Shown piece after piece: positions 1-49,055 of a DNA stretch of 64,000 bases. The position numbers and the translations under genes are program-made. Within the stretch, counting starts at the first letter, position 1. Each line of letters begins with the position of its first letter. The stretch covers positions 1 through 64,000 of IMG/VR virus record IMGVR_UViG_3300035703_000009. One strand, given 5' to 3'. A model generated the notes under the pieces. It had not been told where the DNA came from, did not search any database, and was given only the letters and a program-made list of their open reading frames with translations.

Positions 1-13
1 GTTAGTGGTAATT

Positions 14-277
14 TTAATCTTTGTATCTACTCCATACCGCAGAACCATCAATACCATCTTTCCACATTCCTTCGTCATTTTCCTTAACAGTTTTGAAGAA
101 TTCTTTAACTAAATCCAACACTTCTTTTTTATCCATTTTTACACCTTCGTAATATACATCATCTCTTTGATTTCTGAAGAATTCTTCAAAACGATTAAAA
201 CTACCACTAACATCAGATATACGCAATTCTTTTTCTGCGTTTTCCGAAGTTTTGTCTTTATTATTTAAGTTTTCCAT
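14..277 (-). CDS. hypothetical cassette protein (87 aa)
   Basis: ORF starts inside the loop of attC-like site 1; its leader ends ...LRISDVSGS. Confidence 0.7.
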   Translation of the reverse strand: MENLNNKDKTSENAEKELRISDVSGSFNRFEEFFRNQRDDVYYEGVKMDKKEVLDLVKEFFKTVKENDEGMWKDGIDGSAVWSRYKD

Positions 278-328
278 ATCTATTTAATTTTGTGTTAGAA
301 CTGCGTATATCTACAACAGTTATAGGCA
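202..328. mobile_element. attC-like recombination site 1 (integron-type cassette boundary)
   Basis: TACCACTAAC (202-211) and GTTATAGGCA (319-328) cores flank a 16-bp inverted repeat, AGATATACGCAATTCT (215-230) / AGAACTGCGTATATCT (297-312), 15/16 match. 202-211 is the exact reverse complement of 1-10. Confidence 0.7.
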
Positions 329-520
329 ATGTCTGATGAAGTTCACAGAAAGTATCTCGTATGATGGAAATTTTCGTTTTGCTTTACCTATTGCTCCTTT
401 ATCCGTTTTGGCGAACACTACAATGTCATAATGGGCATAATCCCACCTCATTTTAACCAAGAAGGCACTGCCTATAACAGCAGGTTGCTTCAATGGCTTA
501 GTTTCGTTCTTTTTTGACAT
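320..520 (-). CDS. hypothetical cassette protein (66 aa)
   Basis: ORF starts inside the loop of attC-like site 2; its leader ends ...KQPAVIGS and its stop lies in the TAAC core. Confidence 0.65.
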   Translation of the reverse strand: MSKKNETKPLKQPAVIGSAFLVKMRWDYAHYDIVVFAKTDKGAIGKAKRKFPSYEILSVNFIRHCL

Positions 521-607
521 ATCTTCGTTTATTTAAAGGTTGTAATTCTAATTAAGTTTATCGGTTAAAGTCGCCACTAAAGCAACCTGCAAAACGTTAT
601 GTGTAAT
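469..607. mobile_element. attC-like recombination site 2
   Basis: TGCCTATAAC (469-478) and GTTATGTGTAAT (596-607) flank a perfect 11-bp inverted repeat, GCAGGTTGCTT (480-490) / AAGCAACCTGC (580-590). 469-478 is the exact reverse complement of 319-328. Confidence 0.7.
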
Positions 608-620
608 ACTATTATACTAA
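608..620 (-). promoter_or_regulatory. -10-like box (TAGTATAATAG) pointing into the cassette array
   Basis: ATTATA at 611-616 on +, between the upstream terminator and the first attC-like core. Confidence 0.55.
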
Positions 621-628
621 GTTAGATT

Positions 629-660
629 AAAAAATAAAAAAGGGATCCTAAGATCCCTTT
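629..660 (-). terminator. intrinsic terminator
   Basis: AAAGGGATC-CTAA-GATCCCTTT hairpin (639-660) followed by a T-run on the minus strand, downstream of 684..1442. Confidence 0.8.
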
Positions 661-683
661 AGAGCCTGAAATTAAAATGCGTG

Positions 684-1442
684 TTACTGTTTAGCACCGC
701 AGCTGGGACAGAACTTCCAGCTGGAATTTTTCATCCTGGTGCCGCAGTCGGTGCAATAGTTGCGAATGCTCTGCACTTCTGCTGGCTTGCTCGATTCTGG
801 CAGGATCTGCATCACGATCGATTTGCTAAACCATATAGAATAACTCGAAGAGTCCTGCACAAAGCTTTGGTCGGAGCTCTCGCCCTTTTCAGCTCTGCCG
901 GTCTCGATTGTGCTCTTGCTTTTCACCGAGTTAGTAGACATCAGGGTTCCTGAAGAGTTCGAGGTGGTCGTAAAGCTCCCACCAATTGACTGAGAAGTGC
1001 TTGAGTAATAGCAGTTTACCGTTGTTCCGCCGAATGGAGGAAAACCTGATCCGTTGTAAACGTAGCCAGTCGACCAGTTTGAGGATGGCACGATTTCGTC
1101 ATAGAACTCGATGAGTACCTTGCCGTTCTGCTCGATTGCCTTGGCGGCTTGGGTAGAGTTCTCGACATCATATGTCTCAAATAGGAACTTCTTGGCCTCA
1201 TCGATCCAACGCTCTAAGAAGACGCGTTGGCCTGGACGAAGCACGATCCCTGCAGTCGAGATGGCGACTCCATTCAAGTAGATCTTGGCTAGAACTTTTG
1301 TTTGTTTTGGGTTAAATAACTCGATCTCGAACTGGGTTCCGTTCTTAAGATAGATCGAAGTGCCGTATTGTTTTAGGCGATTGCGATTCACTGCAACGTG
1401 TGCAGTAGGTTCACCCGAACCTGTGGTTGTTGTTTGGTACAT
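684..1442 (-). CDS. conserved phage protein, beta-rich N-domain with C-terminal zinc ribbon
   Basis: 252-aa ORF; C-terminal CTDC...CPSC zinc ribbon; Ser/Thr-rich linker. Confidence 0.75.
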   Translation of the reverse strand: MYQTTTTGSGEPTAHVAVNRNRLKQYGTSIYLKNGTQFEIELFNPKQTKVLAKIYLNGVAISTAGIVLRPGQRVFLERWIDEAKKFLFETYDVENSTQAAKAIEQNGKVLIEFYDEIVPSSNWSTGYVYNGSGFPPFGGTTVNCYYSSTSQSIGGSFTTTSNSSGTLMSTNSVKSKSTIETGRAEKGESSDQSFVQDSSSYSIWFSKSIVMQILPESSKPAEVQSIRNYCTDCGTRMKNSSWKFCPSCGAKQ

Positions 1443-1467
1443 AGTTTACCTGATTATTTTTAATTTA

Positions 1468-1539
1468 AGCTAACGTCTTTGCGGCAGGTACCGCTCCAAA
1501 GCCACTGGGACTCGACGCCAACTAGAGTTTCAGGCTCTA
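1468..1539 (-). ncRNA. candidate structured 5' leader RNA (three-way junction)
   Basis: Minus strand: P1 AGUUGGCGUC/GACGUUAGCU, P2 GAGUC/GGCUU, P3 GCGG/CCGC, plus a 5' hairpin UAGAG/CUCUA. GC-rich stretch in an AT-rich intergenic region. Confidence 0.5.
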
Positions 1540-1624
1540 TTACTATATACTCTGTTAAACATCGTTGGTTTTGGAGCAATCAATTGCGTAACAAAAAATA
1601 AGGAAGCAATTAAAAGGCTTCTTT

Positions 1625-2353
1625 TCATGGTTTTGTCAGTTTTTGATGAGCATCGAGCTGTTTAACTAACTCGTTTATCCCAAAGTCAATAGGGCCGTAC
1701 TCTTCGTCTGAGCAGTCAAATACTACGCGATCGTCCACTAATTTTAGGCATGCACGACGGTTCCACTTCGATTCACCAAAATGGACCATGGTCACTACAC
1801 CACCTGAAGTCTCCTCCTTTTCTTGTAGGCCAGCTAAGATATTTTGCAAATCGCTAGTTGTTTTCCAGGACTCTTTAAAGTCAGGCTGCAATACTTTAAT
1901 TCTTTCAATCAGCTCAGCTTTGTAACCTTTTCTATAAACATACTGCTCAATTGCATCTGCTAGGTTCTGTAAGTATTGAGGAGCTGAAATATTGATACGT
2001 AGATCGTAATCGGACCATTTCGTCTTATAGTCCCACATCATGATGCCGTTAGTCAGTCTTTTTTCCAAGTTATGTAGGAATCGGTTGCGTACTCTAACGA
2101 TGGAGTTGTCGCTGCCAAATAGGTGTAAAAAACGAAGGAACCAACGAGGACACCACCAAGGTTTCGCAGCATGGTCCATTGCAACAACCAACGCCTTAAG
2201 CTCGCTCATCCCATCACCATATGGAACAGAGCCTAAATAATGATACTTCTCCCAAAAGTTCTTGGGGAAGAACACCGCTCTGATGTGATCAAGCTCAATA
2301 TCCATTGTGTGTACTGGGCCCACTTTTGCCTTTTTTCCTTTAAATATTTTCAT
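1625..2353 (-). CDS. hypothetical protein
   Basis: 242-aa ORF in a tightly packed minus-strand run. Confidence 0.7.
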   Translation of the reverse strand: MKIFKGKKAKVGPVHTMDIELDHIRAVFFPKNFWEKYHYLGSVPYGDGMSELKALVVAMDHAAKPWWCPRWFLRFLHLFGSDNSIVRVRNRFLHNLEKRLTNGIMMWDYKTKWSDYDLRINISAPQYLQNLADAIEQYVYRKGYKAELIERIKVLQPDFKESWKTTSDLQNILAGLQEKEETSGGVVTMVHFGESKWNRRACLKLVDDRVVFDCSDEEYGPIDFGINELVKQLDAHQKLTKP

Positions 2354-2356
2354 AAG

Positions 2357-2650
2357 TTATTCTTTATTTGCTAATTCAAATAAAACGTCTGCGTGACAGG
2401 CTTTTGGATGACACCAACACGCGAGTGTCTTACCCTTCAATTTAGGTAGGTGTTCCAGTAACCACTTGCCTTCGCCCTCAGTGATCCACTCACGATACTT
2501 TTCAACAGCTTCTTCTCTGGTCGCAACTATGTGCTTAGCGAGAGTCTTCTTATCGGCCAGGTGGGTGAACGGGTTCCCCCATTGGGTTGGGCGTCCAACA
2601 TAGACGTCGTAGGCTTCCTTTTTAATGTGTACTACTTTAGGATGATTCAT
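2357..2650 (-). CDS. DUF4326-family protein
   Basis: Motifs YDVYVGRPTQWGNPF and LACWCHPKACHADVL; start revised to MNHPKVVH at 2650. Confidence 0.85.
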   Translation of the reverse strand: MNHPKVVHIKKEAYDVYVGRPTQWGNPFTHLADKKTLAKHIVATREEAVEKYREWITEGEGKWLLEHLPKLKGKTLACWCHPKACHADVLFELANKE

Positions 2651-3086
2651 ACTTTTCTTTTTCGGCCGCATCAAGCAGGCCCTTACCAAATTTTTCTACT
2701 CGCTCAACATATCGAGTTTTCACCCGGTCTGAGATGGCAAGCGGCGTGCCCTCATCATCGATGCGAACGAAGGTGATGTTGGTGTGCACCACTACTGCCT
2801 GCTTACCAGTATAAACGTTGTGCTTGCGAACTTCTAAGTAAACTTTGATTGATGTAGTGCCGAACTTTACCACCTCGCCGTAGATCTTTAGGATGTTGCC
2901 GATCTTTACAGGTGTCTTGAACACCAGCTCATCGATCTTTAGGGTGACGATTCGCTGAGTATCACAGATCTGTGAAACGTAAGATGCAGCCGCATCATCG
3001 ACGATCGAAAGTATTGTGCCCCCAAACATATTGGAGTGGACTCCGATATCGCTGGCTTTGCAAATATATGTTGTGATTAGTTCCAT
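2637..3086 (-). CDS. hot-dog fold acyl-CoA thioesterase
   Basis: NMFGGTILSIVDDAA, VTLKIDELVFKTPV, GTTSIKV and ITFVRID motifs of YciA-type thioesterases. Confidence 0.85.
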   Translation of the reverse strand: MELITTYICKASDIGVHSNMFGGTILSIVDDAAASYVSQICDTQRIVTLKIDELVFKTPVKIGNILKIYGEVVKFGTTSIKVYLEVRKHNVYTGKQAVVVHTNITFVRIDDEGTPLAISDRVKTRYVERVEKFGKGLLDAAEKEKYESS

Positions 3087-3090
3087 ATAG

Positions 3091-3438
3091 TTATTTTTTG
3101 ACTACTTTAAAAAGTGCTTTTTCGATGTAGAAACCGTTATTGATGAAATACTTTAAACTATCGACGTTACAGTGCGCGTAAACGGTTTTTTGAACATCCT
3201 TTAATTTAGCATCTCGATAGTTCCATAACATTTTATAGATTCCTCGACTTCTATATTCTTCTTTTACAAATGCATGGCATAAATAAATCACTGTTTCTTG
3301 TTCAACATATGAGACTATTCCTACTAACTCTCCTTTTATGAAACATCCATAATAGGTGGCGATTGCATCAATCAAGTCAGGTTTGATTTCGCTAAATTCC
3401 TTTTTTACTTTAGAATAATCTACTTTTTTTATTTCCAT
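3091..3438 (-). CDS. GNAT-family acetyltransferase
   Basis: FVKEEYRSRGIY acetyl-CoA-binding motif; YFINNGF. Confidence 0.8.
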   Translation of the reverse strand: MEIKKVDYSKVKKEFSEIKPDLIDAIATYYGCFIKGELVGIVSYVEQETVIYLCHAFVKEEYRSRGIYKMLWNYRDAKLKDVQKTVYAHCNVDSLKYFINNGFYIEKALFKVVKK

Positions 3439-4094
3439 TAGCTTTGAATGTTTGAACCAAACGACTTGTCCTGCACAACTTGGTTAAAGGGTAGCACCAC
3501 TCTAATGTTATACTTACCGGATTGGTTATGGTTATAGCTCATGTGCTGTAGTACTTTCGCATAAAAGTTGTCGATCTCCATGCCGGACCGCGCTCCCATC
3601 TCCAAGATGTCGAGGTAAGTCGTCGACTTGAGAGCGTATGCGTGCGCACACACTATCTGATTACGAAAGAACGGCTCGACAAGGCCTCCAAAGTACAGCT
3701 GGTCCCAATCGTTAAGTATCGATTGATTGATAGTTAGCAGCTCATTAGGGTCTGTCAGGAATAGAGCATCGTCCTCTAAGATGAGGACTCTATCCCAACT
3801 CTTGCTCTTAGCCAGCTGCACGCACTTGAGGTGGCTCGCTCTACAGGAGAGGGATCCCAACCTGTACTTCATGTCGTGCTTGATAAAGTTACGATACTCG
3901 ACCTGGTCAGGTAGCTGAGTGAGCTCGACCGCTTCTACTCTCTCAAAGTTGGTGATGTTCCACTTCTTAAACTGCTGTAGCAGACTAGCCATGCGACTCG
4001 TCTCACTAGCTCGGTTAATGTAGAGAACTCGATCAAAGTAGGAGTCGATTGATGTTGCCCGATAGGTAAAGTCATGCATCATCTCCTGTTCCAA
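3438..4094 (-). CDS. GT25-like glycosyltransferase
   Basis: YINR...R start, SCRASH and LILEDDA motifs, AHAY. Confidence 0.8.
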   Translation of the reverse strand: MEQEMMHDFTYRATSIDSYFDRVLYINRASETSRMASLLQQFKKWNITNFERVEAVELTQLPDQVEYRNFIKHDMKYRLGSLSCRASHLKCVQLAKSKSWDRVLILEDDALFLTDPNELLTINQSILNDWDQLYFGGLVEPFFRNQIVCAHAYALKSTTYLDILEMGARSGMEIDNFYAKVLQHMSYNHNQSGKYNIRVVLPFNQVVQDKSFGSNIQS

Positions 4095-4634: not shown

Positions 4635-4904
4635 TTACTTTATTTGGATCATTGATACCGATTCTACTCCGCGATAGATCAAAAGGTTTAGCGTGTCGTT
4701 GACCTGCACTAGGTTTAGACCATGGTCAACTTCGTGAGTCAGCCTGGTAATTTCGATGCCCTTTAGGGTCACGGCGTTGGTGCGGCCGATCTCTTCCACT
4801 TGAGTCGGCAGTTTCTTTGATTTCATCTTAATAAAGTAGGAGATTCCGATCGATGTTAATATTGAGAAGATTAAGATTAAGATAAACGGTTTTAGGTTAT
4901 ACAT
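4635..4904 (-). CDS. hypothetical membrane-anchored protein
   Basis: N-terminal hydrophobic segment FILILIFSILTSIGISYFI. Confidence 0.65.
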   Translation of the reverse strand: MYNLKPFILILIFSILTSIGISYFIKMKSKKLPTQVEEIGRTNAVTLKGIEITRLTHEVDHGLNLVQVNDTLNLLIYRGVESVSMIQIK

Positions 4905-5427
4905 GGGCCTCTTGGGTTTTATTCTGGTGATTTAAGATCCTGTCTAAATGTTTCCACATCGCGCTGGCTTCGAGGTGTTCAGGTGTGAACAGGTTATCCC
5001 TAAAGTCCTGGTATTCTGAATAGTACATCTTCACGATGTCGTTGCCCATTCGTTGGCCGTGCTCGATGTTTGCGATGCGATCGGCTAGCTTCACGATGAT
5101 GGCTAACTCACCGCAAGCCCTAATCTTAGGATAGGTTTTGGCCTTGCGCTCCTTACGATTGCGACCTAGTTCGTCAGTGACTGCGAAGACTATCTCTGCC
5201 ACCCTGGTGCCAAAGGCTTGCTTGATCTTTGAATATGTTAGGTCGCCGTCCTCGATCGAGTCGTGCAACCAGCCGGCAATTAGGGCATCGCCGCTGTGAC
5301 CATACCGCTTAAGCACGTCGACCACATCGCGTAGGTGCTTTTCATATGGAAAAATATCGTATGTCTGGTTTCTGTGGGTCAACAGTGATACCATCTCAGC
5401 TTCGTGATATAGTTTTGCGTAATTCAT
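4897..5427 (-). CDS. HD-domain hydrolase, RelA/SpoT hydrolase (Mesh1/SAH)-like
   Basis: H.NQ..PY..H, AGWLHDSIED, FG.RVA.IV..VTD and VKLADRIAN motifs. Confidence 0.85.
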   Translation of the reverse strand: MNYAKLYHEAEMVSLLTHRNQTYDIFPYEKHLRDVVDVLKRYGHSGDALIAGWLHDSIEDGDLTYSKIKQAFGTRVAEIVFAVTDELGRNRKERKAKTYPKIRACGELAIIVKLADRIANIEHGQRMGNDIVKMYYSEYQDFRDNLFTPEHLEASAMWKHLDRILNHQNKTQEAHV

Positions 5428-5806: not shown

Positions 5807-6988
5807 TTATTTTCTGTCCTCAAGCAACTTCACTCCAAGTAAGCTTTCCAATAGGTTGGCTTGACCGTTTCCGTTGCTGCCTGAAATGTAGGTATTAGGC
5901 AGAGTAACTTTAGATAGTTTTTCAGCAACTCCGACTTTCGTCTTGTACTCCCATTCAGCTTTCTCCTGTGGAGTAAGACCGGCCGCTACTAATTTTGCGT
6001 TCTGATAAGATTGAGCATCAGCTAAGATCTTAATTTTTTGGTTTTCCAACTCAGCTGCCTCTTTTTCAAGTTTAGCAACCTCTTTTCTAGTTTCAGCGGT
6101 AACTACCTGTTTAGTTTGATCTTGTTTTTGTTCATATTCTATCTCCACGAGAGCTTGTTCACCCTTTGCCTTGGCTGTGAGGGCCTGTTGTTGGGCAGTC
6201 ATCAATTCCTGCTTGGAAACGCTAGCCTTAGTCGATGCGGCAACTTTCTTTGAGATCATGTCGTCCACTTGCTTTTCATAATCAACATCAGTGACCTGAG
6301 CGTCAGCTACTGTGATATTGTATTCTTTGATTGAGGAAGTTTTACGTTTGTATGTGCCGTCTCCGTTCTTTTGGATCTCTGTCTTATACACTCGCTTGTC
6401 TTCTTTCTCGAGAGAGTCGAACACAAACTGCTCGCTGGTCATCAAGAGGAAGGATCCATTCTTTAACTGATCGATGAAGTCCTGGGCCATCTGTGCTCGA
6501 CCTCCGGAGTAGTGCATCTCTGAGCTCATCAGCTGGGCTGAAGACTGCAAGCACTCTTTGGTATAAGGAGAGAGGCGTTTGGTCACCAACGACTGCGGAG
6601 TACGATGCGTGTTGTGGATGAGTACCATGTCCTTCTCGTCATTCGGCAAGATGTACTGGGTGATACCTTTCACATTAGCAGTAGTCGCGTCTCCACCAAA
6701 TCGAATGTTAATCACTCCGATCTCGATTGAGTTGTCGTTAAGATCTAAGTCGGCTTCGTTTTGCTGGTACGAAACTGAGATTTGGTTTGGCCATGCGGTC
6801 TGCTTTGCAAAGAAACCTGCATAGTAGACACCGGACTCAAACTGAACGAATTGCTTTCCACTTAATTGCTGGACAACGGTACGTTCACCACCATCGTTCC
6901 AGGAGAATGGGTTGATTATCGAAACTACGATTAACCCTACGATTGCAAGACCGGCAATCACGGCATACTTGATTGGACTTTTTTCCAT
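5807..6988 (-). CDS. SPFH/band-7 (prohibitin/flotillin-like) membrane protein
   Basis: N-terminal TM helix, GERTVVQ, ITVADAQVTDVDY and an Ala/Glu-rich coiled-coil tail. Confidence 0.8.
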   Translation of the reverse strand: MEKSPIKYAVIAGLAIVGLIVVSIINPFSWNDGGERTVVQQLSGKQFVQFESGVYYAGFFAKQTAWPNQISVSYQQNEADLDLNDNSIEIGVINIRFGGDATTANVKGITQYILPNDEKDMVLIHNTHRTPQSLVTKRLSPYTKECLQSSAQLMSSEMHYSGGRAQMAQDFIDQLKNGSFLLMTSEQFVFDSLEKEDKRVYKTEIQKNGDGTYKRKTSSIKEYNITVADAQVTDVDYEKQVDDMISKKVAASTKASVSKQELMTAQQQALTAKAKGEQALVEIEYEQKQDQTKQVVTAETRKEVAKLEKEAAELENQKIKILADAQSYQNAKLVAAGLTPQEKAEWEYKTKVGVAEKLSKVTLPNTYISGSNGNGQANLLESLLGVKLLEDRK

Positions 6989-7007
6989 TTTATTGTTGTT
7001 TAATTGT

Positions 7008-7280
7008 TTACAGATGTGATATTTTGCTCTTTAGGTCTTGAGCACGAGTGAGCTGATTTTTATAGCTCTCAAGGCGTTGTTCTGCCTCGATGACGCCGTT
7101 TGCAGAGTCAGCTTCTGCCTCTTCAATACGCTTCTTCAGCGTCTCGATGATCTGATCGATGCTTGTAGTGTCTGCCTTTTGCTTTGCTGGTGCCAAGTAA
7201 AACTTAGCAATGTTCCAGATTGCCCAAAAGAAGAGTAGGCTAAAACCTACGATGATGAATGTTACTAATAGTTTAAACAT
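7008..7280 (-). CDS. small membrane protein with coiled coil (likely SPFH partner)
   Basis: N-terminal TM helix; lies directly upstream of the SPFH gene. Confidence 0.65.
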   Translation of the reverse strand: MFKLLVTFIIVGFSLLFFWAIWNIAKFYLAPAKQKADTTSIDQIIETLKKRIEEAEADSANGVIEAEQRLESYKNQLTRAQDLKSKISHL

Positions 7281-7291
7281 AGTTTGATTGG

Positions 7292-7717
7292 TTATACGGT
7301 GTGCTCAATTCTTACTCTAACGCAAGTCTGAGGTTTATGAAAATTCATGAAAAAGTTATTGATGTAGCCCATTATGTTAGCTGAGCCGATTGGATTTGCC
7401 GAGTGGGTGTATATTGTTGGAAAATATCCACGTTGGTGAGGGTGCCTGACCTCAAACCAGTGTTCAACTAGCCATTTAGCGCAGTCATATCCGGTCTTTT
7501 CCTTGATGTTGTCGTAATTGAGAGTGTAGTTAGGAGAGACGTTTGTGTAATATTCCTGCATCGCAGAATCTCCCAAGTCATGGTCTAACGAGATGGTCTC
7601 TATGTTGTCCAGCCCAAGTTCATTGACTTTAGCTACGAACTCATCGTAACTTCTCACCACTATCCACTCAGGATCGATGGGAGTCCTGACGTCATCTAAA
7701 TAGATTTTATGTTTCAT
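7292..7717 (-). CDS. cyclic-phosphate-processing receiver-like domain protein
   Basis: IYLDDVRTP, ISLDHDLG, TGYDCAKW and HSANPIG motifs; start revised to MKHKIYLDD at 7717. Confidence 0.8.
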   Translation of the reverse strand: MKHKIYLDDVRTPIDPEWIVVRSYDEFVAKVNELGLDNIETISLDHDLGDSAMQEYYTNVSPNYTLNYDNIKEKTGYDCAKWLVEHWFEVRHPHQRGYFPTIYTHSANPIGSANIMGYINNFFMNFHKPQTCVRVRIEHTV

Positions 7718-7773
7718 TGGAGCTATTATACTAACTTGAACTACTACTTTAAAATTTGTTTTGTGCAATGCGA

Positions 7774-7780
7774 ATAAATA
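7774..7780 (+). promoter_or_regulatory. late promoter ATAAATA
   Basis: T4-like late consensus, 18 nt before ATG 7798. Confidence 0.7.
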
Positions 7781-7797
7781 ACTAAAAAAGAAGCAAT

Positions 7798-8448
7798 ATG
7801 TCAGAACGAGTACTAAATTTCTCAGAATTCTTCACAAAATACTCAAAGGAAGGACACGTAGACCAGGCAAGCCTTGATAACTTTACAGGAGCAGCCGCTA
7901 ACTTTGAAGAAGGATTTGACAAAGACACATACGACCAAGCTCCACTGGGTCCAAAAAAACCGATCGCATCAAGCACTGAGACAACTCCTCCACAACCTGG
8001 AGAAGTAGGAGCTCCTACCTTTAACGCAGAAACAGAAGAAGACATGGTCGCGCCAGACGAGATCGTTGCTGCCGATGAACCTGAAGGAGATGCAGAAGAG
8101 CCAGCCGAAGAGGCTGATGAATCTGATGAGCCGACAGAAGAAAAAGAAGAGAATGATGAGACACCAGAACCGGAAGCCGGCGCTAATCCTAAGAAGAAAG
8201 AAGAAAAGGTAGAAGAAGGATTAGTTGTAGATTTCGCTAACTTCATCAATGAAGAGTTCGATGACTTTGAATACGAAGGAGATGATCACTATCATGAAGA
8301 GCAAGAAGAAGACGACTTATTGGGAGCTAATCCATTTGACGAAGACGATGACTTTGGCCATGAAGAAGACGAATACGAATATTGCGATCAGTGTGACGAA
8401 CCTATCTATCACACGGTAGAAGGAGCAAGCTGCGGATGTAACATGTAA
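7798..8448 (+). CDS. acidic low-complexity late protein, putative internal head protein
   Basis: Late promoter; N-terminal VLNFSEFF and internal VVDFANFINE motifs; D/E-rich; C-terminal CxxC...CxC. Confidence 0.7.
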   Translation: MSERVLNFSEFFTKYSKEGHVDQASLDNFTGAAANFEEGFDKDTYDQAPLGPKKPIASSTETTPPQPGEVGAPTFNAETEEDMVAPDEIVAADEPEGDAEEPAEEADESDEPTEEKEENDETPEPEAGANPKKKEEKVEEGLVVDFANFINEEFDDFEYEGDDHYHEEQEEDDLLGANPFDEDDDFGHEEDEYEYCDQCDEPIYHTVEGASCGCNM

Positions 8449-8460
8449 AAAACTTAACGA

Positions 8461-9054
8461 ATGACTGGAATAATTATTGCATTCTTAGCAGGAGCGACGG
8501 CCGCAACATCTGCCTTGCTTGCCAAAAAATACTTGGCAACTAAAAAAAGACCTGACCTGATCGCTGACACAGTGAACAACGCTAACGTGATACACGATCA
8601 ATTAGATAAAATGCTAATAGAGTTTGAAGCCAACCGAATTTGGATAGCACAGTTTCACAATGGCGGACACTATTATCCAACCGGTAAGTCAATCCAAAAA
8701 TTTAGCTTCTTTTTTGAAGTAGTAAAGAACACAAAGGACGCTATTCAATCTAATTTTCAAAACATACCAGTGAACCTGTTTAGCAGAGCGCTAGGACAGA
8801 TACTTGAGAACGACATAATCGCTATCCCAGACTATAAAGACAAGAAGGTCGCTACCTATGGATTAAAATATGTGGCTGAGACCCACAAGTCAAAGAGCTC
8901 ATACCTTTTTGCCATCCGCAACGTTGACAACCGACTGATTGGTGTCATCGGGATCGACTATACCGAAAAAACTAAAAAACTTGATCCTCTTGATGTGACC
9001 CTACTTAAGTTAGAGGCAACCAAGATCGGTGGAGTGTTGATGAGTCACCTATGA
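8461..9054 (+). CDS. TM + GAF-like domain protein, putative T4 gpT-type holin
   Basis: Single N-terminal TM helix followed by ANRIWIAQFHNG...LIGVIGIDY, a GAF-fold pattern. Confidence 0.6.
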   Translation: MTGIIIAFLAGATAATSALLAKKYLATKKRPDLIADTVNNANVIHDQLDKMLIEFEANRIWIAQFHNGGHYYPTGKSIQKFSFFFEVVKNTKDAIQSNFQNIPVNLFSRALGQILENDIIAIPDYKDKKVATYGLKYVAETHKSKSSYLFAIRNVDNRLIGVIGIDYTEKTKKLDPLDVTLLKLEATKIGGVLMSHL

Positions 9055-9326
9055 GACTATTAGAAAGCTTTATGGAGTTCATTCAATCTGCTGCAGTGCA
9101 CCAACAACCCGATGCATATTCATATTATGGCAGCAATCCACGTAGAGCAGGAAAACGACTGATTGATAACTTACGAGAATTTTCTCAATCGTCAAACTCG
9201 TCATCATCAAAATCGTCTAAGTCTCCAGTCGGAGCAGAAGGCACTGAACCTAGTGTAGGAAAGTCCCAATTGAGCAAGACGTCGTCTAACTCATCGCTGA
9301 CCATCGTCAAGACTTGTAAGTCTTGA
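9051..9326 (+). CDS. hypothetical late protein (3' half overlaps an antisense gene)
   Basis: ATGA-coupled to the upstream gene; N-terminus MRLLESFMEFI. Confidence 0.45.
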   Translation: MRLLESFMEFIQSAAVHQQPDAYSYYGSNPRRAGKRLIDNLREFSQSSNSSSSKSSKSPVGAEGTEPSVGKSQLSKTSSNSSLTIVKTCKS

Positions 9327-9442
9327 ATCGCATGCCCGCTACTCTTCGTTAAAACTCGAGTCTTAATGGCTTCAAGCTTTTTTAAGATCTCATTTTCAAT
9401 CTCTTTAAGCGCAATCTTGATTTCTGGTGATTCTTGTGACAT
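9185..9442 (-). CDS. hypothetical protein with acidic tail
   Basis: Own AAAAC-N18-TACTAT promoter ending 5 nt before the ATG. Confidence 0.65.
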   Translation of the reverse strand: MSQESPEIKIALKEIENEILKKLEAIKTRVLTKSSGHAIQDLQVLTMVSDELDDVLLNWDFPTLGSVPSAPTGDLDDFDDDEFDD

Positions 9443-9478
9443 GTTCTATAGTACTAGTAAAAGTTTTTCGAGTTTTAG

Positions 9479-9485
9479 ATAAATA
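9479..9485 (+). promoter_or_regulatory. late promoter ATAAATA
   Basis: 18 nt before ATG 9503. Confidence 0.7.
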
Positions 9486-9502
9486 ATCAAGACAAATAAC
9501 TT

Positions 9503-9895
9503 ATGAACATGCTTAAACTTAGAAGACTAGTAGAACAAGATGAACCGATGTCAGCAATGACTGCACCGGCTCAGCCTGACATGCAAATGCCAGCCATGCC
9601 AGCTGACTTACCTGCACAGCTACCTACTCCAGCTCAATCGACTGTACCTGTTGATCCGATGACAATGACTGTTAGGGACTTTTTAGATAAGTGCAAGTCA
9701 CTTGACCCTCTAGTTTGCATGGGCATAGAGTCATTCATAGAAAAAAATACTGAAGCTTTCGGCGCAGATCAAGCACAAAGTGAGCCAGACCTTACTTTCT
9801 CAAATGCAGTTCAACCTGCAGCACCTCAAGCACCAGCTCAAGTTGAACCATTTTCCCTAGATCAAGCACCGGACGCTCTTAACTTCCCGGGATAA
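9503..9895 (+). CDS. Pro/Ala-rich late protein
   Basis: Late promoter; N-terminal LRRLVEQ. Confidence 0.65.
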   Translation: MNMLKLRRLVEQDEPMSAMTAPAQPDMQMPAMPADLPAQLPTPAQSTVPVDPMTMTVRDFLDKCKSLDPLVCMGIESFIEKNTEAFGADQAQSEPDLTFSNAVQPAAPQAPAQVEPFSLDQAPDALNFPG

Positions 9896-10179
9896 TGAGA
9901 GCAAAGAACTTCGATCAATACTTAAATGAAGTGCTAGGAGCAAATTCGATGGAAACCGACCCATTGGACTTAATCTTACGTCCAGACATTATTAGGCCCA
10001 ACCCAGTGACTTTGGGAGCTGGCTCAAGCTCGACAATACCTATGCATTGGAACAACTCACCATTTCTATCAGGAAGCAGGCTGACCAGTGCTTTTGGAAT
10101 AAATCCAAAGGCTCCGACTAGAAAGAAAGCATTACGCTTCCATGAGTTCATAGGAGCAGTTAAGAAGCTCACTAAATAA
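9895..10179 (+). CDS. putative internal head protein
   Basis: N-terminus MRAKNFDQYLNE; C-terminal LRFHEFI. Confidence 0.65.
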   Translation: MRAKNFDQYLNEVLGANSMETDPLDLILRPDIIRPNPVTLGAGSSSTIPMHWNNSPFLSGSRLTSAFGINPKAPTRKKALRFHEFIGAVKKLTK

Positions 10180-10182
10180 ATA
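10176..10182 (+). promoter_or_regulatory. late promoter ATAAATA
   Basis: 15 nt before ATG 10197. Confidence 0.7.
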
Positions 10183-10196
10183 ATAAAAAGAAGACC

Positions 10197-10562
10197 ATGG
10201 CATACGTCTCAAACTTTAAGAAATTCATCAAAACAGAAGAAAAGAAAACGACTGAAACTGGTGCGAACCCATCAATAGAGGAACAGGTTACATCGACTGA
10301 ACCTACTACTGATACTCCAGACACGAATGCTGCTCAGACCGAGACTCCGGCTGCTCCGGCAAGCGTAGAAGCAGATCCTGCGGTTGCAGCAGCTCGTCAA
10401 TCAGTCGCTCAAGCTATCGCAAATCGTGATAAGACGGTAATGGCAAAACAGGCTGAACTAGATAAACTAAAGACTGATCAGAATAACTTGGTTAACACAG
10501 CTAACACTAACTTAAATAAAGCCCTGCAAGACGCAGCTAAAAAACAAACAACTCAAGCCTAA
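10197..10562 (+). CDS. putative internal head protein, Thr/Ala-rich
   Basis: N-terminus MAYVSNFKKFI; late promoter. Confidence 0.65.
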   Translation: MAYVSNFKKFIKTEEKKTTETGANPSIEEQVTSTEPTTDTPDTNAAQTETPAAPASVEADPAVAAARQSVAQAIANRDKTVMAKQAELDKLKTDQNNLVNTANTNLNKALQDAAKKQTTQA

Positions 10563-37266: not shown

Positions 37267-38153
37267 TTTCCTCTTAATGTTTTTCTTTTGTCAAGTTCAG
37301 ACTTAAGAACTTCTCTGGGGCCGTAACCTCCTCTAGCGCTTTCGATATCACGAATGCTCTTTATCAGCTTAATGAGTCCTTGGGGCTCGACTGAAGCTAT
37401 TTGATCACTGCCCCAAAGAGAACGATCGACTGTGATGTGACGTTCGATCCAGGTGGCTCCAAGCAAAGTTGCAGCAATGGTCGTAGTAAGTCCAAACTCA
37501 TGACCGGAATACCCCACCGCAAATGACTTTGGAAAGTCTTTACCCTTACTGATGTGGCTCAAGTAGGTGATATAGTCGAGATTAAGTTCATGATTTGGAG
37601 CAGGATAAGTAGAGTTAGTATGAAAAACTACATCAGGTCTACATTCAACTACTGCTAAGTCTATTTCCTCTTGTGTGCTCATACCGGTGGAGATAAGGAG
37701 AAAGTCTGAACAGTCTCGTGCGTATTGAATTAGCTCGAGGTCATGGATTAGGGCCGATGGTATTTTCATCATCACTCCCCACTTGCCATTAGGTAAGAGG
37801 GTCTCAAATTTTCGCGCAAAGTCAACTGACTTTTTGTCCCACACTGAGGTAAACCAACGCATTTTTCGAGCTTCGCAATAGTCATCTATTTCCTTGTACT
37901 GTTCATGGGAAAGCTCAATGTCGAGTTTATATTGAAAGTAAGTGGTCGCCTCTTTGCGCCAGGGCACCCTTTTTGTTTTTGACCTTTCCGCTTGAGGAAC
38001 ACACGATTCAGGATCACGTTTTTGAAACTTTACATAATCAACTCCGGAAACTGCCGCAATATCAATAAGTTTTTTTACATTATTGATGAATTCCTTCGTA
38101 GAGGAACCATATGCATAATTTATGCCTATTTCTGCAATTATCGTGGTTTTCAT
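37263..38153 (-). CDS. neuB: N-acetylneuraminate/nonulosonate synthase lacking the C-terminal AFP/SAF domain
   Basis: IIAEIGIN, VKFQKR, KIPSA, ISTGMS, STYP, GYSGHE, IERHIT and GSDQ; start revised to 38153 (ATGA overlap). Confidence 0.92.
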   Translation of the reverse strand: MKTTIIAEIGINYAYGSSTKEFINNVKKLIDIAAVSGVDYVKFQKRDPESCVPQAERSKTKRVPWRKEATTYFQYKLDIELSHEQYKEIDDYCEARKMRWFTSVWDKKSVDFARKFETLLPNGKWGVMMKIPSALIHDLELIQYARDCSDFLLISTGMSTQEEIDLAVVECRPDVVFHTNSTYPAPNHELNLDYITYLSHISKGKDFPKSFAVGYSGHEFGLTTTIAATLLGATWIERHITVDRSLWGSDQIASVEPQGLIKLIKSIRDIESARGGYGPREVLKSELDKRKTLRGK

Positions 38154-39184
38154 GAGTTTACTAGAGAGTTTATCCAAGAAAAAGTTTTTTTCATTCCATC
38201 TACTAAAGGCTGGGAGACTTTCCAACCCATTTTTTCTTCATAAAGTTGGTTGTCTGAATTTCTACCTTTGACTCCAATTGGACACTTGAATCCGTACTTT
38301 TTCTTGAATTCTTCGCCTTCTATATTTTCAATAGAGATATTTTTATTTGAGATTAAGATCGCCATTTCAGCAAGTTGATTAATTGTAACCATCTCTTCAG
38401 AACCGATGTTGACAGGTCCTAAGAATCCATCTTGTCTCATGAATCTAAGAACTGCTTCAACACAATCATCAATGTACAAAAAAGAGCGAGTCTGCATACC
38501 GTCTCCCCAAACTTCTATGATACCTCCGCTCTGGGTTTCTGCTACTTTGCGGCACATTGCAGCGGGAGCCTTTTCCTTACCTCCTTTCCAAGTTCCATAG
38601 GGGCCAAATATGTTATGGAACCTGGCAATTCGCACGTCTAGCCCGTAGTTTCTATGAAAAGCTAAATAAAGTCGCTCACTAAAAAGTTTTTCCCAACCGT
38701 ATTCTGAGTCAGGATTTGCTGGATATGCTGATGACTCTTCACAATTTGGGTTATTTGGATCGAGCTGATTGTGCTCTGGGTACATGCACGCAGAAGAGCT
38801 ATAGAAAATCTTCTTTACTGATTTTTTGACGGCTTCATGTGCAACATTTAAGTTTATTAGAGATGAGTTATGCATTACATTAGCATCGTTATTACCTGTA
38901 AAAATATAACCAGCTCCTCCCATGTCAGCAGCAAGTTGATAAACTTCATCGAAAGATTTTTCTCTGTCCCCTTCAAAAGTTTGATTAGGAGATAACATGA
39001 CACAACTTACAAACTTAGGGTCTCTAAGATCACCTAAAATAAACTCATCACAAAAATCATCTTTATCAAAGTACTCATGAACTTTAATGTCAACTGCTCT
39101 GACCCAAAAGCCTTCTTCCTTTAATTTTTTAGCCAGGTGGCCTCCTATGAAGCCTCCTCCACCAAGTACTAGTGCCTTTTTCAT
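38150..39184 (-). CDS. NAD-dependent epimerase, GDP-mannose 3,5-epimerase-like
   Basis: GGGGFIG, QLAADMGGAGYI, YSSSACMYPE, YGWEK, RFHNIFGP and EKAPAAMCRK. Confidence 0.88.
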   Translation of the reverse strand: MKKALVLGGGGFIGGHLAKKLKEEGFWVRAVDIKVHEYFDKDDFCDEFILGDLRDPKFVSCVMLSPNQTFEGDREKSFDEVYQLAADMGGAGYIFTGNNDANVMHNSSLINLNVAHEAVKKSVKKIFYSSSACMYPEHNQLDPNNPNCEESSAYPANPDSEYGWEKLFSERLYLAFHRNYGLDVRIARFHNIFGPYGTWKGGKEKAPAAMCRKVAETQSGGIIEVWGDGMQTRSFLYIDDCVEAVLRFMRQDGFLGPVNIGSEEMVTINQLAEMAILISNKNISIENIEGEEFKKKYGFKCPIGVKGRNSDNQLYEEKMGWKVSQPLVDGMKKTFSWINSLVNS

Positions 39185-39921
39185 AATTTTCTTTTATTTT
39201 TTTCAAAAATTTTGTCTCCTGGAAAGGAGGCTGTATTTATGAATCCTTTTTGAGTTAAGAAAGCCATCATTTCATCTAGTGAATTTCCTGCCTGAACCGT
39301 ATGCTTTTGGTCCCACTCAATTATAAGAGTAAGGTTATTTGCTTTTTCTAAAAAATCGCTCATACCTTTTAATACATTCATCTCAAACCCTTGAACATCA
39401 ATTTTTATTAACCCAATATCGTAACTTGGATTTTCAAGTAAAAACGTGTCTAATTTTTTACAGACAACTTGCTCAGTAATGTAATTTTTAGAATTCATAT
39501 TAGAGATCGCAACCTCTTTGTTAAAGGAAGCATTGTCTGAGCAATAAGGAATGAATATTTCTTGAGTAGTATCAGAATCAAATAGAGCAAAGTTTAGAAT
39601 TTGCATGTTTTTACAAGAGTTTGCACTTTTACTCTGCTCTAACAATGAAACATTCATACTAAGCGGCTCAACTGATAGTACGGAATAACCATATTTTTCA
39701 GCAGGTATTGAAAACATTCCGCAATTTGCACCAACATCTAACACAGACCTAGATTTATCCATTTTTCTTACAAGATTAAGCATCATAGTGTAATCCTTCA
39801 TCTCATTGAGGTTTGTTCTAGCTTTTATTTTATAGTCAGTGACAAAATAGTCAAAATTAAAGATTACGTATTCAAAATTAGCGTTTTTAAAAATAAATCT
39901 TTCAGGTTTAGTAGAAATCAT
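39181..39921 (-). CDS. FkbM-family methyltransferase
   Basis: LDVGANCG, VEP and IKIDVQGFE. Confidence 0.85.
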   Translation of the reverse strand: MISTKPERFIFKNANFEYVIFNFDYFVTDYKIKARTNLNEMKDYTMMLNLVRKMDKSRSVLDVGANCGMFSIPAEKYGYSVLSVEPLSMNVSLLEQSKSANSCKNMQILNFALFDSDTTQEIFIPYCSDNASFNKEVAISNMNSKNYITEQVVCKKLDTFLLENPSYDIGLIKIDVQGFEMNVLKGMSDFLEKANNLTLIIEWDQKHTVQAGNSLDEMMAFLTQKGFINTASFPGDKIFEKNKRKL

Positions 39922-39932
39922 GAGCGTTTAGA

Positions 39933-40715
39933 TTATTTGAAGTAAGAATCATAATTAAAATCAGATAACTTATTTGAATAGTAATGAGGTCCTATTATTT
40001 TTAAGAATGCGTTTTGGTCCTTGATTCCACCGTCAGTGTCGCTAGCATTAGTCAACTGATTAGCCATACCGGGAGTAAATGAATAGCAGTTTAACGAAGG
40101 CTCAATTAGTATGAATGAGTGATCTATTGCTCGAGATCGGTGCACACACGCGTCCAGTAACTCTACTATTTTAGGTATTGAACTTGGATTAATTAAATAT
40201 GAGTGGCCGCAAAAAGAACCATATACTCGGTGTATGTACTTGATTCCAGTTAACTCATAATCCCCTCCTTTATTCCAACGACTGGGATCATTGTTTAGAT
40301 GATAAAAAGAAGAAAGGAAAAATATGTCCCAATCTAGGTTAAATTTTTCTTCAATGTACTTAAATCTTTCGTTAAAATCTTCGCAGAGAATGACATCATC
40401 TTCAAATATTCCAAGTATCTTATCACTGCTAGTATCGTATTCTTTAATTAGAGTGTAGTGGGAGCGATAGCATTTTTTCTGTCCTTCAGAAAAGGCTGAA
40501 CTAAATGGTATGCTGCAGCCAGATAAGTCTTCGTACGCTCTAAATTTTTTAGCATCGATGTTATGCTTTTTTAATTCAGAATTAACGTGGGCAAGTCTGT
40601 CTACTCTTCTGTCTAAATTTATGAAATAGAAGTCAATGTTCTTTCTTTCTATTTTTAAGAAGGTTTTTGTGTGAGCCATATACTTATGTATTATTTTTGT
40701 CTTATTTTTATCCAT
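39933..40715 (-). CDS. GT25 glycosyltransferase
   Basis: INLDRRVDR, CYRSH and IFEDD. Confidence 0.82.
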   Translation of the reverse strand: MDKNKTKIIHKYMAHTKTFLKIERKNIDFYFINLDRRVDRLAHVNSELKKHNIDAKKFRAYEDLSGCSIPFSSAFSEGQKKCYRSHYTLIKEYDTSSDKILGIFEDDVILCEDFNERFKYIEEKFNLDWDIFFLSSFYHLNNDPSRWNKGGDYELTGIKYIHRVYGSFCGHSYLINPSSIPKIVELLDACVHRSRAIDHSFILIEPSLNCYSFTPGMANQLTNASDTDGGIKDQNAFLKIIGPHYYSNKLSDFNYDSYFK

Positions 40716-41530
40716 CTTTCTGGAGTCAAAGCATTAGTATCAAAGCTTTGATAGTCTGGTCCAAACCACTCATCTGGATAAGGACAGTAAACAAGCTTAT
40801 CCGTAGATTTTGATAAATATGCAGCCCACCATGAAAAAGTACTGTTTGCAATAATGAAGTGGTCACACAAAGACTGAGCTATGAAGTCACTAATATAATC
40901 ATCGCTATAGTCAAAATAAGTAATAGGTTTTTGATATTTTTCAAATTTTCCAAATATGAATTCTTTAGTATCTTCATTATCAGTAAAGATGCATATTTCA
41001 TCGATGCTTTTTTTAGATAAAATGTCTTCTATACTTCTTTGATAGTATTCTAAAGTAAGAACTGGGTGTCTATGCTCGACACCTTTATGCCCTCCTCCAA
41101 ATTTACGATCATACTGATCACCCCAGCGTATGTGAATCGAAAGTTTCTTTGAGTTCTGATTCATTTTACTATTAACCTTTTCTATAATAGTTGGGTCAAA
41201 GACCAAATACTCAAGTACTTTTTTTTCATAATCATCAAAAAACAAAGAGGACTGAAAATATCCTACTATTTCTACTAATTTATCACTAGTTGGAATATTG
41301 TGGATTCCAAATTTAGATTCCTTATGAGTCAGTGAAATATTTGACTTTATTTTGACAGAGGAACGTGTAGGTAGATTTGGAAAAAGCTTTGCGTGCTCCC
41401 ACTCAGATGGAACAAAAAAGCTACTGTTGTTCTTAATTGCTTGACCAATAATAGTCGCAACTCTAAACAATTGATTGCCAAGGCGTCCATGACGATGGTC
41501 TAATATTTGCAAAGTAGTGAAACCTTTCAT
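40691..41530 (-). CDS. GT11 alpha-1,2-fucosyltransferase-like
   Basis: GRLGNQLF, GYFQS, HIRWGD and IIANSTFSWWAAYL. Confidence 0.9.
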   Translation of the reverse strand: MKGFTTLQILDHRHGRLGNQLFRVATIIGQAIKNNSSFFVPSEWEHAKLFPNLPTRSSVKIKSNISLTHKESKFGIHNIPTSDKLVEIVGYFQSSLFFDDYEKKVLEYLVFDPTIIEKVNSKMNQNSKKLSIHIRWGDQYDRKFGGGHKGVEHRHPVLTLEYYQRSIEDILSKKSIDEICIFTDNEDTKEFIFGKFEKYQKPITYFDYSDDYISDFIAQSLCDHFIIANSTFSWWAAYLSKSTDKLVYCPYPDEWFGPDYQSFDTNALTPERWIKIRQK

Positions 41531-41546
41531 ATTTAAAAATTGTTTT

Positions 41547-42464
41547 TTATGAGTTTTGTACTACACTAGACTCAATGAGTTTAGACGGAAGCATTATTTT
41601 CGGTTCACTGAAACTTGCACTTTTAAAAAATTTATCATTATAATTGATAGTGTTTCGAGTAAGTGTGTGATGAAAGATTCCATCGTAATAGCTTTGGCTA
41701 TGATATACACTAGCTACATAGCTAAGAGAACTCTTTGACATTATGAATGCATCTGATTTGATTATTCTATCTAGCGTTTTTACAGGGTGCTCATCTAAAT
41801 GAAAAAATACTTTTCCATGCGCATTAAGTTCATTAAAATATTGAAAATCTAAAATGTCACCTTGAGAGTAAATATGAAATTGAATATTTTTATTAGTGGG
41901 CATGATTTCTTTAACGAAGTCAATGGAGCCGTTAGGAATATTGGGGTAATAATATCTACGCCATTCGGAGAAATCAGTGTCCTCGTCAGTAGCTCGTCTA
42001 ACATGAATAGAAATAATGAAATCTGAATTTTCTTCTCTTGGGTATTTTTTAATTAACTCTTCTTGAATATTGTTTAATAGAAAAATGTTATGGTCAGTTA
42101 GTGTCTTTAGATCTGCCCAGTGAAGATTAACTATTGATTTTTCTAAAGAGGAAGGATTATATATTAAAGTGTCTAACAATTCATATACACTCAGCTCTAC
42201 TACAGGAAGCGAATCAGACTCAGTAATCGAGTCTCTTAATAAAAAATCTCGAGTATATTCAAAAAAATGAAGATCCCATTCTTCTTGAGAAAAATTAAAT
42301 TTTTGAATGTGTCCAACGTTTTTCATTGGAGTTAATAAAAAATCAACTCCATAGTGTTTAGCCAATGCATAGCCGCCTAATTGAAGTTGAAAGGCAGAAC
42401 CAAAACCTTCGTTGTGTCCAGGAAGGTATAAATTTGAACAATCTATCTCACATTTTATTATCAT
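41547..42464 (-). CDS. GT11/GT23-like GDP-sugar transferase
   Basis: EGFGSAFQ, IHVRR, FHIYSQG and MSKSSLSY. Confidence 0.65.
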   Translation of the reverse strand: MIIKCEIDCSNLYLPGHNEGFGSAFQLQLGGYALAKHYGVDFLLTPMKNVGHIQKFNFSQEEWDLHFFEYTRDFLLRDSITESDSLPVVELSVYELLDTLIYNPSSLEKSIVNLHWADLKTLTDHNIFLLNNIQEELIKKYPREENSDFIISIHVRRATDEDTDFSEWRRYYYPNIPNGSIDFVKEIMPTNKNIQFHIYSQGDILDFQYFNELNAHGKVFFHLDEHPVKTLDRIIKSDAFIMSKSSLSYVASVYHSQSYYDGIFHHTLTRNTINYNDKFFKSASFSEPKIMLPSKLIESSVVQNS

Positions 42465-43171
42465 TACATTCCTCCAGTAAAATTTGAAAAATCTTTATTT
42501 AAAATTATATTATTCTGAAAACGAAGATTTCCATCAAAAGTTTGATAAAAAGTAAAATTTTGAGTTTTCATAAAATCTAATATTTCTTCTCTAGAAGAAG
42601 CATTTTCATACTGATATCGACAATCGTCTTCCATGTCCAAAAATTGAACTCTACGCAAATGTGGACCTAAACTCTTTGTAATATCTAAATCTTTTCCTTG
42701 AGCATCTATTTTTATTAATTCGATGTGTTCATATACTAGTGAGTCCAATAACATCTTAAGAGAAAAGGTTTCCACGTCAATTTCGCAATCTATTTCACAC
42801 TCTGGAATATTTTGCAATTTTGGAGTCAATAGACTAGAACAGCCAACATTTCCACTAAGAAGGTAAAATTTACTTTCACGTAAGGTGTCAACATTATCAC
42901 AAGCACCAATTATATGATAATAGTTTTCTTTTTGTTCATTTTCTTTAAATACATCTAATATGTTCCAGGTTTTTCCATCCCACTCATTTATTCCATCCAA
43001 ACAATAAGGATTAGGTTCGATTCCAATTACAAAAATATTTTTGACATTAGAGAACCACTGACGTGTGACTGGAGCGCTTATTGACGTGCCTATGTCAAAT
43101 CGCAATTTTTTATTTTTTAACTTTGAATTTAGTAATTTAAAATCACAATTTGAAAATTTACTAAAATTCAT
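42464..43171 (-). CDS. FkbM-family methyltransferase
   Basis: DIG, GIEPNP and IKIDAQGKD. Confidence 0.8.
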   Translation of the reverse strand: MNFSKFSNCDFKLLNSKLKNKKLRFDIGTSISAPVTRQWFSNVKNIFVIGIEPNPYCLDGINEWDGKTWNILDVFKENEQKENYYHIIGACDNVDTLRESKFYLLSGNVGCSSLLTPKLQNIPECEIDCEIDVETFSLKMLLDSLVYEHIELIKIDAQGKDLDITKSLGPHLRRVQFLDMEDDCRYQYENASSREEILDFMKTQNFTFYQTFDGNLRFQNNIILNKDFSNFTGGM

Positions 43172-43809
43172 TTTGTAAAAATATAATTTTCTCCATCAAA
43201 AACTTCTTTTTCAAAATATCCTATTGACTCCAAGTAATTTTTAGCATCTTGAATAGTATGACCTCGCTTTTCAAGAGCGTGATTGAGCTCTATGATAATT
43301 AAAGGAGACTGCTCTCTTAAAAACTTTTCACCGCCTAAGAGCACTTCATAATCATAGGAGTCAACATCAATTTTTATTAAGTCTATTTTTTTTCCAATTT
43401 GTTCAACAAAAGAATTTAGAGTTATGAAATCATGTTCGCGATCATCAGTTATACCTTGAGACCAAACTTTAAAAATTTTATCTAGTTTAAGGCCATCTTC
43501 TTTTCCAAGAGGTCTATTAATTAGAATTACGTTCTCTTTACAGTCATTGTATGCCAAGTTTTTCTCTAACATATCGACAATATCAGTAGGTTCAAATGCA
43601 TAAACTGTTCCTTTTGATGCAAGTTTAGAAAAAGGAATTGTGTACATTCCTATGTTTGCACCTGCGTCTATGATATTAAATTCAGGCTTTACGTAAGAAT
43701 GTATAAACTTTTTAGTGGAAATCTCAGCAGAAGAAAACCAGCCGGCGTCACATTCGTTATATGATGGAAAAGAATATGAAATTTCTGAAGTATATTGAAT
43801 TGAGATCAT
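43168..43809 (-). CDS. FkbM-family methyltransferase
   Basis: IDAGANIG, AFEP and IKIDVDSYD. Confidence 0.85.
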   Translation of the reverse strand: MISIQYTSEISYSFPSYNECDAGWFSSAEISTKKFIHSYVKPEFNIIDAGANIGMYTIPFSKLASKGTVYAFEPTDIVDMLEKNLAYNDCKENVILINRPLGKEDGLKLDKIFKVWSQGITDDREHDFITLNSFVEQIGKKIDLIKIDVDSYDYEVLLGGEKFLREQSPLIIIELNHALEKRGHTIQDAKNYLESIGYFEKEVFDGENYIFTK

Positions 43810-44366: not shown

Positions 44367-44376
44367 CGTAGTTCAT

Positions 44377-49052: not shown

Positions 49053-49055
49053 TAT

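Follow-up and report, generated by a model that had tools for sequence, protein, structure and literature searches.

The first 607 nt of this jumbo-phage contig are the distal end of an array of small genes, each with its own DNA hairpin site, and the array works like a bacterial integron without being one. Arrays of this type are common in freshwater phages, where they often lie beside a phage recombinase gene. Modular cassettes, exact junctions at a GTTA core, complementary cassette ends and polymorphism within one phage lineage were all found. That a phage Xer-like tyrosine recombinase acts on these sites, that the sites fold as single-stranded DNA and that circular intermediates form is inferred. 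A site-specific, recombinase-driven cassette system is considered likely.

Inverted repeats and hairpin elements at positions 1-607

The analysed stretch (hereafter the window) comprises 64,000 nt and begins at base 1 of a 207,110-bp IMG/VR contig, a size that makes it a jumbo phage. Genes for portal, prohead protease, DNA polymerase, helicase and topoisomerase are present. The closest GenBank relatives are metagenomic huge phages, at only 24-28% protein identity, and a near-identity search of positions 1-3000 against GenBank phages gave no match. The backbone genes next to the array (2357-4094 and 4897-5427, minus strand) include DUF4326, a 4HBT thioesterase, an acetyltransferase, a GT25 glycosyltransferase and an HD_4 domain protein, which are auxiliary and not structural genes. 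Further away, a 13-kb block of lower G+C (0.30-0.37 against about 0.43) at 38150-51151 (minus strand) encodes a glycan-synthesis set (NAD epimerase/dehydratase, FkbM methyltransferases, GT25, GT11, a UDP-glucose/GDP-mannose dehydrogenase, a GT29-like transferase and a cytidylyltransferase) and looks like an acquired island.

Positions 1-607 are A+T-rich, unlike the backbone that follows, and consist of four abutting inverted repeats. A preliminary description had reported two elements with TAAC and GTT cores, and small genes lying between cores that are perfect 10-bp complements (1-10 with 202-211, 319-328 with 469-478). These features were confirmed, and the complementarity was found to be longer, namely 1-22/190-211 (22 nt, 91%) and 319-334/463-478 (16 nt, 88%). 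The internal repeats of the two elements are 215-230/297-312 (16 nt, 94%) and 480-497/573-590 (18 nt, 89%). As also described, the flanks of a single element do not match each other beyond TAAC/GTTA. One correction concerns the two small open reading frames, which run into the elements: their ribosome-binding region, start codon and first 14-22 codons lie in the hairpin loops. The following features were defined:

1..15 (+): R' box of cassette 1 (GTTA core plus variable bases, A at position 11); the contig starts exactly at the G of the core, and cassette 1 is taken as 2-319.
14..277 (-): cassette 1 gene, 87 aa, function unknown; it starts inside the loop of element 1 and reads through the TAAC core, with GTT read as Val.
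197..211 (+): R'' box of cassette 1, ending in TAAC, with C at position 11 from the core end.
208..322 (+): hairpin element 1 (attC-like), composed of TAAC, 3 nt, stem 215-230, 66-nt loop, stem 297-312, 6 nt and GTTA, with an A.C mismatch at 226/301.
319..333 (+): R' box of cassette 2, complementary to 464-478; cassette 2 is taken as 320-596, and the stop codon of its gene is the TTA of the core.
320..520 (-): cassette 2 gene, 66 aa, function unknown; it starts inside the loop of element 2.
464..478 (+): R'' box of cassette 2.
475..599 (+): hairpin element 2 (attC-like), composed of TAAC, 1 nt, stem 480-497, loop, stem 573-590, 5 nt and GTTA.
596..610 (+): distal end of the array, a GTTA core followed by a half-site that obeys the R' rule (A, T at positions 11-12) but has no partner; it is interpreted, by inference, as the remnant of the primary insertion site.
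612..617 (-): perfect TATAAT hexamer facing the array, a candidate promoter only, its role being inferred, and not reported by a consensus scan because the -35 hexamer is poor.
639..660 (-): terminator-like hairpin plus T run ending the backbone operon, just before the array.

The arrangement is not due to chance. Among 31 inverted repeats of at least 14 nt in the whole window, five fall within the first 607 nt, where about 0.3 would be expected. A covariance model built from 16 homologues of element 1 scored 202-328 at 116 bits (E 1e-20) and 469-605, which was not in the training set, at 60.5 bits (E 1.7e-9), and found nothing else in the window. A first, loose hairpin scan was no better than shuffles (8 hits against about 10) and was replaced by a scan requiring the asymmetry of the spacers. 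The latter found only the two elements in 64 kb, both in the same orientation. Searches of the cassette proteins against PHROGs, Pfam and the protein atlas gave nothing usable.

A phage-specific family of arrays and the linked recombinase

A 40-mer from the start of the window also hit a second viral locus (L001), where a longer array lies to the left. There, small minus-strand genes are separated by units of the form TAAC, 1-3 nt, stem, loop, stem, 5-6 nt, GTTA, which come in a 48-nt version of highly conserved sequence and in 80-200-nt versions like the two in the window. The body of cassette 1 is 99% identical in L001 and 92% identical in three further loci (L041, L075 and L090). Rfam gave no family for the related array. 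A 33-mer of the short version occurs on 104 viral contig stretches, on contigs from 4 kb to 464 kb, but in only one of 185,579 bacterial and archaeal species genomes, on a 1.4-kb contig (CAYWZI010000295.1) binned into a Microbacteriaceae MAG, which is probably a mis-binned phage fragment. The family is therefore phage-specific. In the fetched loci, the scan found 659 elements, against 80-90 in shuffles, and the covariance model gave 115 hits in 32 loci. A large share of the arrays lie at contig ends, suggesting that these loci regularly break metagenomic assemblies, as happened at position 1 of the window.

In L001 and L106, a related locus, the array ends about 55 nt from the start of a gene for a 267-aa tyrosine recombinase, and the first cassette next to it begins with the same 13-mer as the half-site at 596-610. 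Pfam assigned Phage_integrase plus Phage_int_SAM_4 to this protein. The best NCBIfam models were XerA_Arch (180.6 bits, cut-off 220) and the integron-integrase subfamily TIGR02249 (153.6 bits, cut-off 265, in two pieces). When aligned to VchIntIA (2a3v), the protein has 31 residues where IntI has 79, while the alignment to XerA (4a8e) is continuous, and the expected catalytic motifs are visible. It thus lacks the I2 insertion that defines IntI and that is reported as essential for hairpin recombination (PMC8138268, PMC7790495). Hairpin recombination would therefore need another solution, or the substrate may be double-stranded. Homologues at 63-100% identity are encoded by 41 viral loci, and public databases hold at least 120 clusters at 82% identity or more, named only "XerD". 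A distant homologue (36% identity) is carried by the isolates Polaribacter phage Freya_1 to Freya_10 (MT732463-MT732472), in which the DNA before that gene ranges from about 50 nt to about 4.1 kb, but no TAAC/GTTA hairpin elements were found there.

In related phage contigs, such arrays are tightly linked to the recombinase gene. Upstream of it, 125 correctly oriented elements were counted in 104.6 kb, against 4 in 160.5 kb downstream, and 24 of 26 loci with enough upstream sequence have an array. With the covariance model, all hits are upstream and on one strand. In 28 loci, a conserved ATATATAATA|GTTA lies about 55 nt upstream of the recombinase start codon, and the sequence becomes variable immediately after GTTA, which is the behaviour of an attI site. 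This was seen in relatives and not in the window. A different backbone without a recombinase gene, represented by three related contigs (L157, L159 and L163) of phages of about 58-84 kb with a DnaB-type helicase, has its own conserved junction (ending in TATTTGGGA, then GTTA), followed by three different first cassettes.

The preliminary description had proposed that the array might use a host or distant tyrosine recombinase, as no integrase was seen. Indeed, no recombinase gene was found in the 64-kb window, nor next to several other arrays. For instance, the closest backbone relative in GenBank (LR756500.1, a 462-kb huge phage) carries an array of at least 8 elements of the same family (6448-10271) with no recombinase gene within 10 kb on either side. 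Arrays lacking a recombinase are inferred to be served in trans or from elsewhere in the genome. The enzyme linked to the related arrays is a phage-encoded Xer/XerA-like protein and not a host IntI.

An alternative is that the array is a fragment of a canonical bacterial integron, a cluster of attC sites lacking an integrase (CALIN), picked up from a host and mobilised by host IntI. CALINs recognised by IntI1 have been reported in virulent phages (PMC9892861), and the AAC/GTT core and the cross-matching are shared with attC sites. However, the near-absence of the short element from species genomes, the non-IntI nature of the linked recombinase, the inverted gene orientation and the lack of attC-type bulged bases all speak against it, and the 15-nt R box with TAAC/GTTA, in which position 5 is T in 60% of cases and the rest is free, appears to differ from RYYYAAC/GTTRRRY. 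This explanation is considered very unlikely.

Cassette units, polymorphism and strand asymmetry

The ends of each cassette body are complementary to each other. Across 195 non-redundant cassettes, the 8 nt after GTTA match the complement of the 8 nt before the next TAAC at 5.25 of 8 positions, against 2.8 for shuffled partners and 2.9 for the two flanks of one element. The latter value is the random level, and accordingly no circle junctions were detected. In 283 cassettes the complementarity covers positions 1-15, with a fixed non-complementary position 11, where the base is A on one side (276 of 283) and C on the other (210 of 283). Both cassettes of the window and the terminal half-site at 596-610 obey this rule. 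In 114 array loci, 139 right ends of homology fall at GTTA +3 to +5, and examples that break exactly at GTTA were found.

The extent of the mobile unit was established with two phage contigs (L158 and L162) which are 100% identical on both sides of a single additional unit in L158. This unit consists of the body of a 236-aa N6/N4 methyltransferase gene with complementary ends plus the hairpin to its right in window orientation, and ACGTTA is shared at both junctions. Systematic mining gave only this one fully clean cassette indel, and statistics on whether a shared body keeps its left or right element had too few informative pairs. The unit therefore runs from TTA through the body and the hairpin to the next G, so that in gene orientation the hairpin precedes the gene.

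An exact look-up of the 87-aa protein of cassette 1 returned 8 contigs. Contigs with the same backbone (27 differences in 5,400 nt, or fewer; at least 99.5% identical) from other samples extend to the left of position 1, in line with the proposal of the preliminary description that the array continues there. One variant continues with a long element, an 80-aa cassette, another element and a 55-aa cassette, while the other continues with the short conserved element and a 71-aa gene. Both diverge exactly at 1|2. In one variant (L151) the core left of cassette 1 reads ATTA instead of GTTA, everything from TTA onwards being identical, which is either a point mutation of the core or a sign that the base before TTA belongs to the left partner. 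In the probable source run, the main contig stops at position 1 with two alternative neighbours. Contigs from other lakes break at 319 and 476. In two lake runs the backbone contigs begin exactly at 319, with alternative left neighbours, and in a third (X4) the body of cassette 2 (253-420) has zero depth although the backbone is present. As these are assembler contigs from metagenomes, some alternative junctions could belong to co-occurring phages that share cassettes rather than to variants of one phage. Searches for the far end of the array with backbone patterns found only the contig itself in IMG/VR and nothing in the metagenome collection, and a look-up of the 90-aa gene left of the array found only one short contig. 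The identical 55-aa cassette protein occurs in at least three unrelated phage backbones, flanked by elements there too.

Not all exchanges follow a single crossover point. Bodies and elements have also been exchanged at the TAAC core: elements 1 and 2 of the window (the latter 94% identical) sit between other bodies in the locus L096, element 1 is also next to other bodies in lake samples, and the loci L117 and L079 share a body between unrelated elements.

It could be argued that each body is a miniature transposon bounded by its 15-nt terminal inverted repeats, or that the hairpins, whose fixed tetranucleotides recall IS608-type ends, are targets of a single-strand HUH transposase of the IS200/IS605 or REP/RAYT type. 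Against this, the inverted repeats differ for every body with only the 4-nt core constant, the associated gene is a tyrosine recombinase and no transposase or HUH gene is associated, and the units are strictly tandem and co-oriented at one locus per genome. The covariance model found no copies elsewhere in the window. This possibility is regarded as highly improbable.

The stems are supported by covariation. On the covariance model hits, 94.5% of cells are paired, against 56% in shuffles and about 30-46% for slid partners, and 616 cells show double changes against 170. Although that alignment is fitted to the model, which inflates pairing somewhat, the unfitted alignment of 16 homologues of element 1 already shows six compensatory pairs. 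Isolated non-Watson-Crick pairs in the stems are A.C on the plus strand of the window in 292 cases, G.T or T.G in 52 and other in 48, even though the scan favoured G.T on that strand, and position 11 of the long arm shows the same bias. The minus strand, which carries the genes, therefore forms G.T pairs where the plus strand has mismatches. This fits selective folding of one DNA strand, as in integrons, but fits an mRNA structure equally well. In 110 of 240 long elements an ATG-initiated ORF starts in the loop and runs through the core, and GTT is in frame as valine in 88 of those, a count inflated by relatedness among the elements.

[quoted passage not shown] A conserved module (hairpin plus about 35 nt of 5' leader) does sit between variable ORFs, many left ends of homology lie 33-37 nt from TAAC, the irregular pairs are G.U on the transcribed strand, the loops of long elements hold the ribosome site and start codon, and PeSLs also generate mini-circles (PMC2839356). 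However, this explains neither the complementarity of the two ends of every body, nor the sharp junction at GTTA next to non-homologous sequence, nor the near-obligate position upstream of a tyrosine recombinase with a conserved junction site. Moreover, the elements have no T run and gave no sigma-70 promoter match in a consensus scan, the promoter type of the host being unknown, and elements of neighbouring cassettes differ in sequence, which leaves little homology to recombine on. This explanation is considered unlikely.

In the favoured model, each cassette is a body with complementary ends (GTTA-N6-A-T ... C-N6-TAAC) followed by a hairpin element with an 11-20-bp stem. The recombinase is proposed to cut and rejoin within the core (G|TTA), inserting cassettes at the attI-like site and excising them by hairpin-to-hairpin recombination. 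In an excised circle the two body ends would meet around the hairpin and form a full 15-bp arm, which would explain why each gene lies between complementary cores.

More tentatively, the system is possibly an integron analogue native to phages, perhaps evolved independently, in which a simple Xer-like recombinase without the IntI helix recombines folded hairpins. It would trade small host-takeover or anti-defence genes among unrelated phages, jumbo phages included, acting in trans during co-infection on arrays that lack their own recombinase. The in-frame reading of the core suggests that the same recombination could swap start-codon/N-terminal modules between genes. The integron integrase is thought to have become able to use hairpin DNA by gaining one helix; a second, phage-borne platform would show that this strategy arose, or diverged, more than once. 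It would also give phage ORFan regions a concrete exchange mechanism, define a large pool of mobile phage genes, including DNA methyltransferases, that can be mined for counter-defence functions, and provide a compact recombinase/site pair of interest as a genetic tool.

Comparison with known systems

No description of this system was found in the literature searched, which did not include most subscription journals. Bacterial integrons, especially sedentary chromosomal integrons with homogeneous attC sites (Vibrio cholerae repeats), share with these arrays the tandem one-gene cassettes with an imperfect hairpin site, the AAC...GTT core with the crossover at G|TT, the complementarity of the inverse core to the first bases of its own cassette, the fixed primary site next to a tyrosine recombinase with a variable first cassette, the precise gain and loss of units, families of near-identical sites within a lineage, and mostly ORFan cargo plus DNA methyltransferases. 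The arrays described here differ by the 267-aa Xer/XerA-like enzyme without I2 insertion, by the complementary arm of about 15 nt with a fixed mismatch/wobble at position 11, and by the asymmetric internal loop (1-3 versus 5-6 nt) and the A.C/G.T pair in place of extrahelical bases. Their genes read towards the primary site and are co-oriented with the recombinase gene, the hairpin lies 5' of the gene and often contains its start codon and first ~20 codons, and they are found in phages and not in bacterial genomes, apart from the single MAG contig mentioned above.

The integrons and CALINs reported in phage genomes (Qi et al., 2023, PMC9892861) are likewise cassette arrays with hairpin sites in virulent phages and with DNA methyltransferase cargo. 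They were found with IntegronFinder, as canonical attC sites recognised by IntI1, in 21 phages, whereas the present family is a separate, phage-specific one with its own non-IntI recombinase and is far more widespread in metagenomic phages.

The PeSL cassettes of T4-type phages (Arbiol et al., 2010, PMC2839356; Comeau et al., 2014, PMC4122927) also are conserved stem-loop modules between small non-essential genes in variable regions of large phages, with module-level shuffling and proposed circular intermediates. PeSLs are a strong promoter plus a terminator and shuffle by homologous recombination. Here, the only terminator-like site on the gene strand (660-639) lies outside the array, and the element stems are A+T-rich and followed by GTTA. 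The arrays have complementary body ends, an exact GTTA junction and a linked tyrosine recombinase.

Finally, a Xer-type recombinase is shared with the pdif modules of Acinetobacter plasmids and with CTX phage integration through a folded single-stranded attP, the latter being a possible precedent for hairpin substrates without an IntI insertion. In contrast to the 28-bp dif-like sites (11-6-11) that flank such modules in alternating orientation, the sites described here are 48-200-nt hairpins with a 4-nt core, all in one orientation and arranged in a tandem array at one locus.
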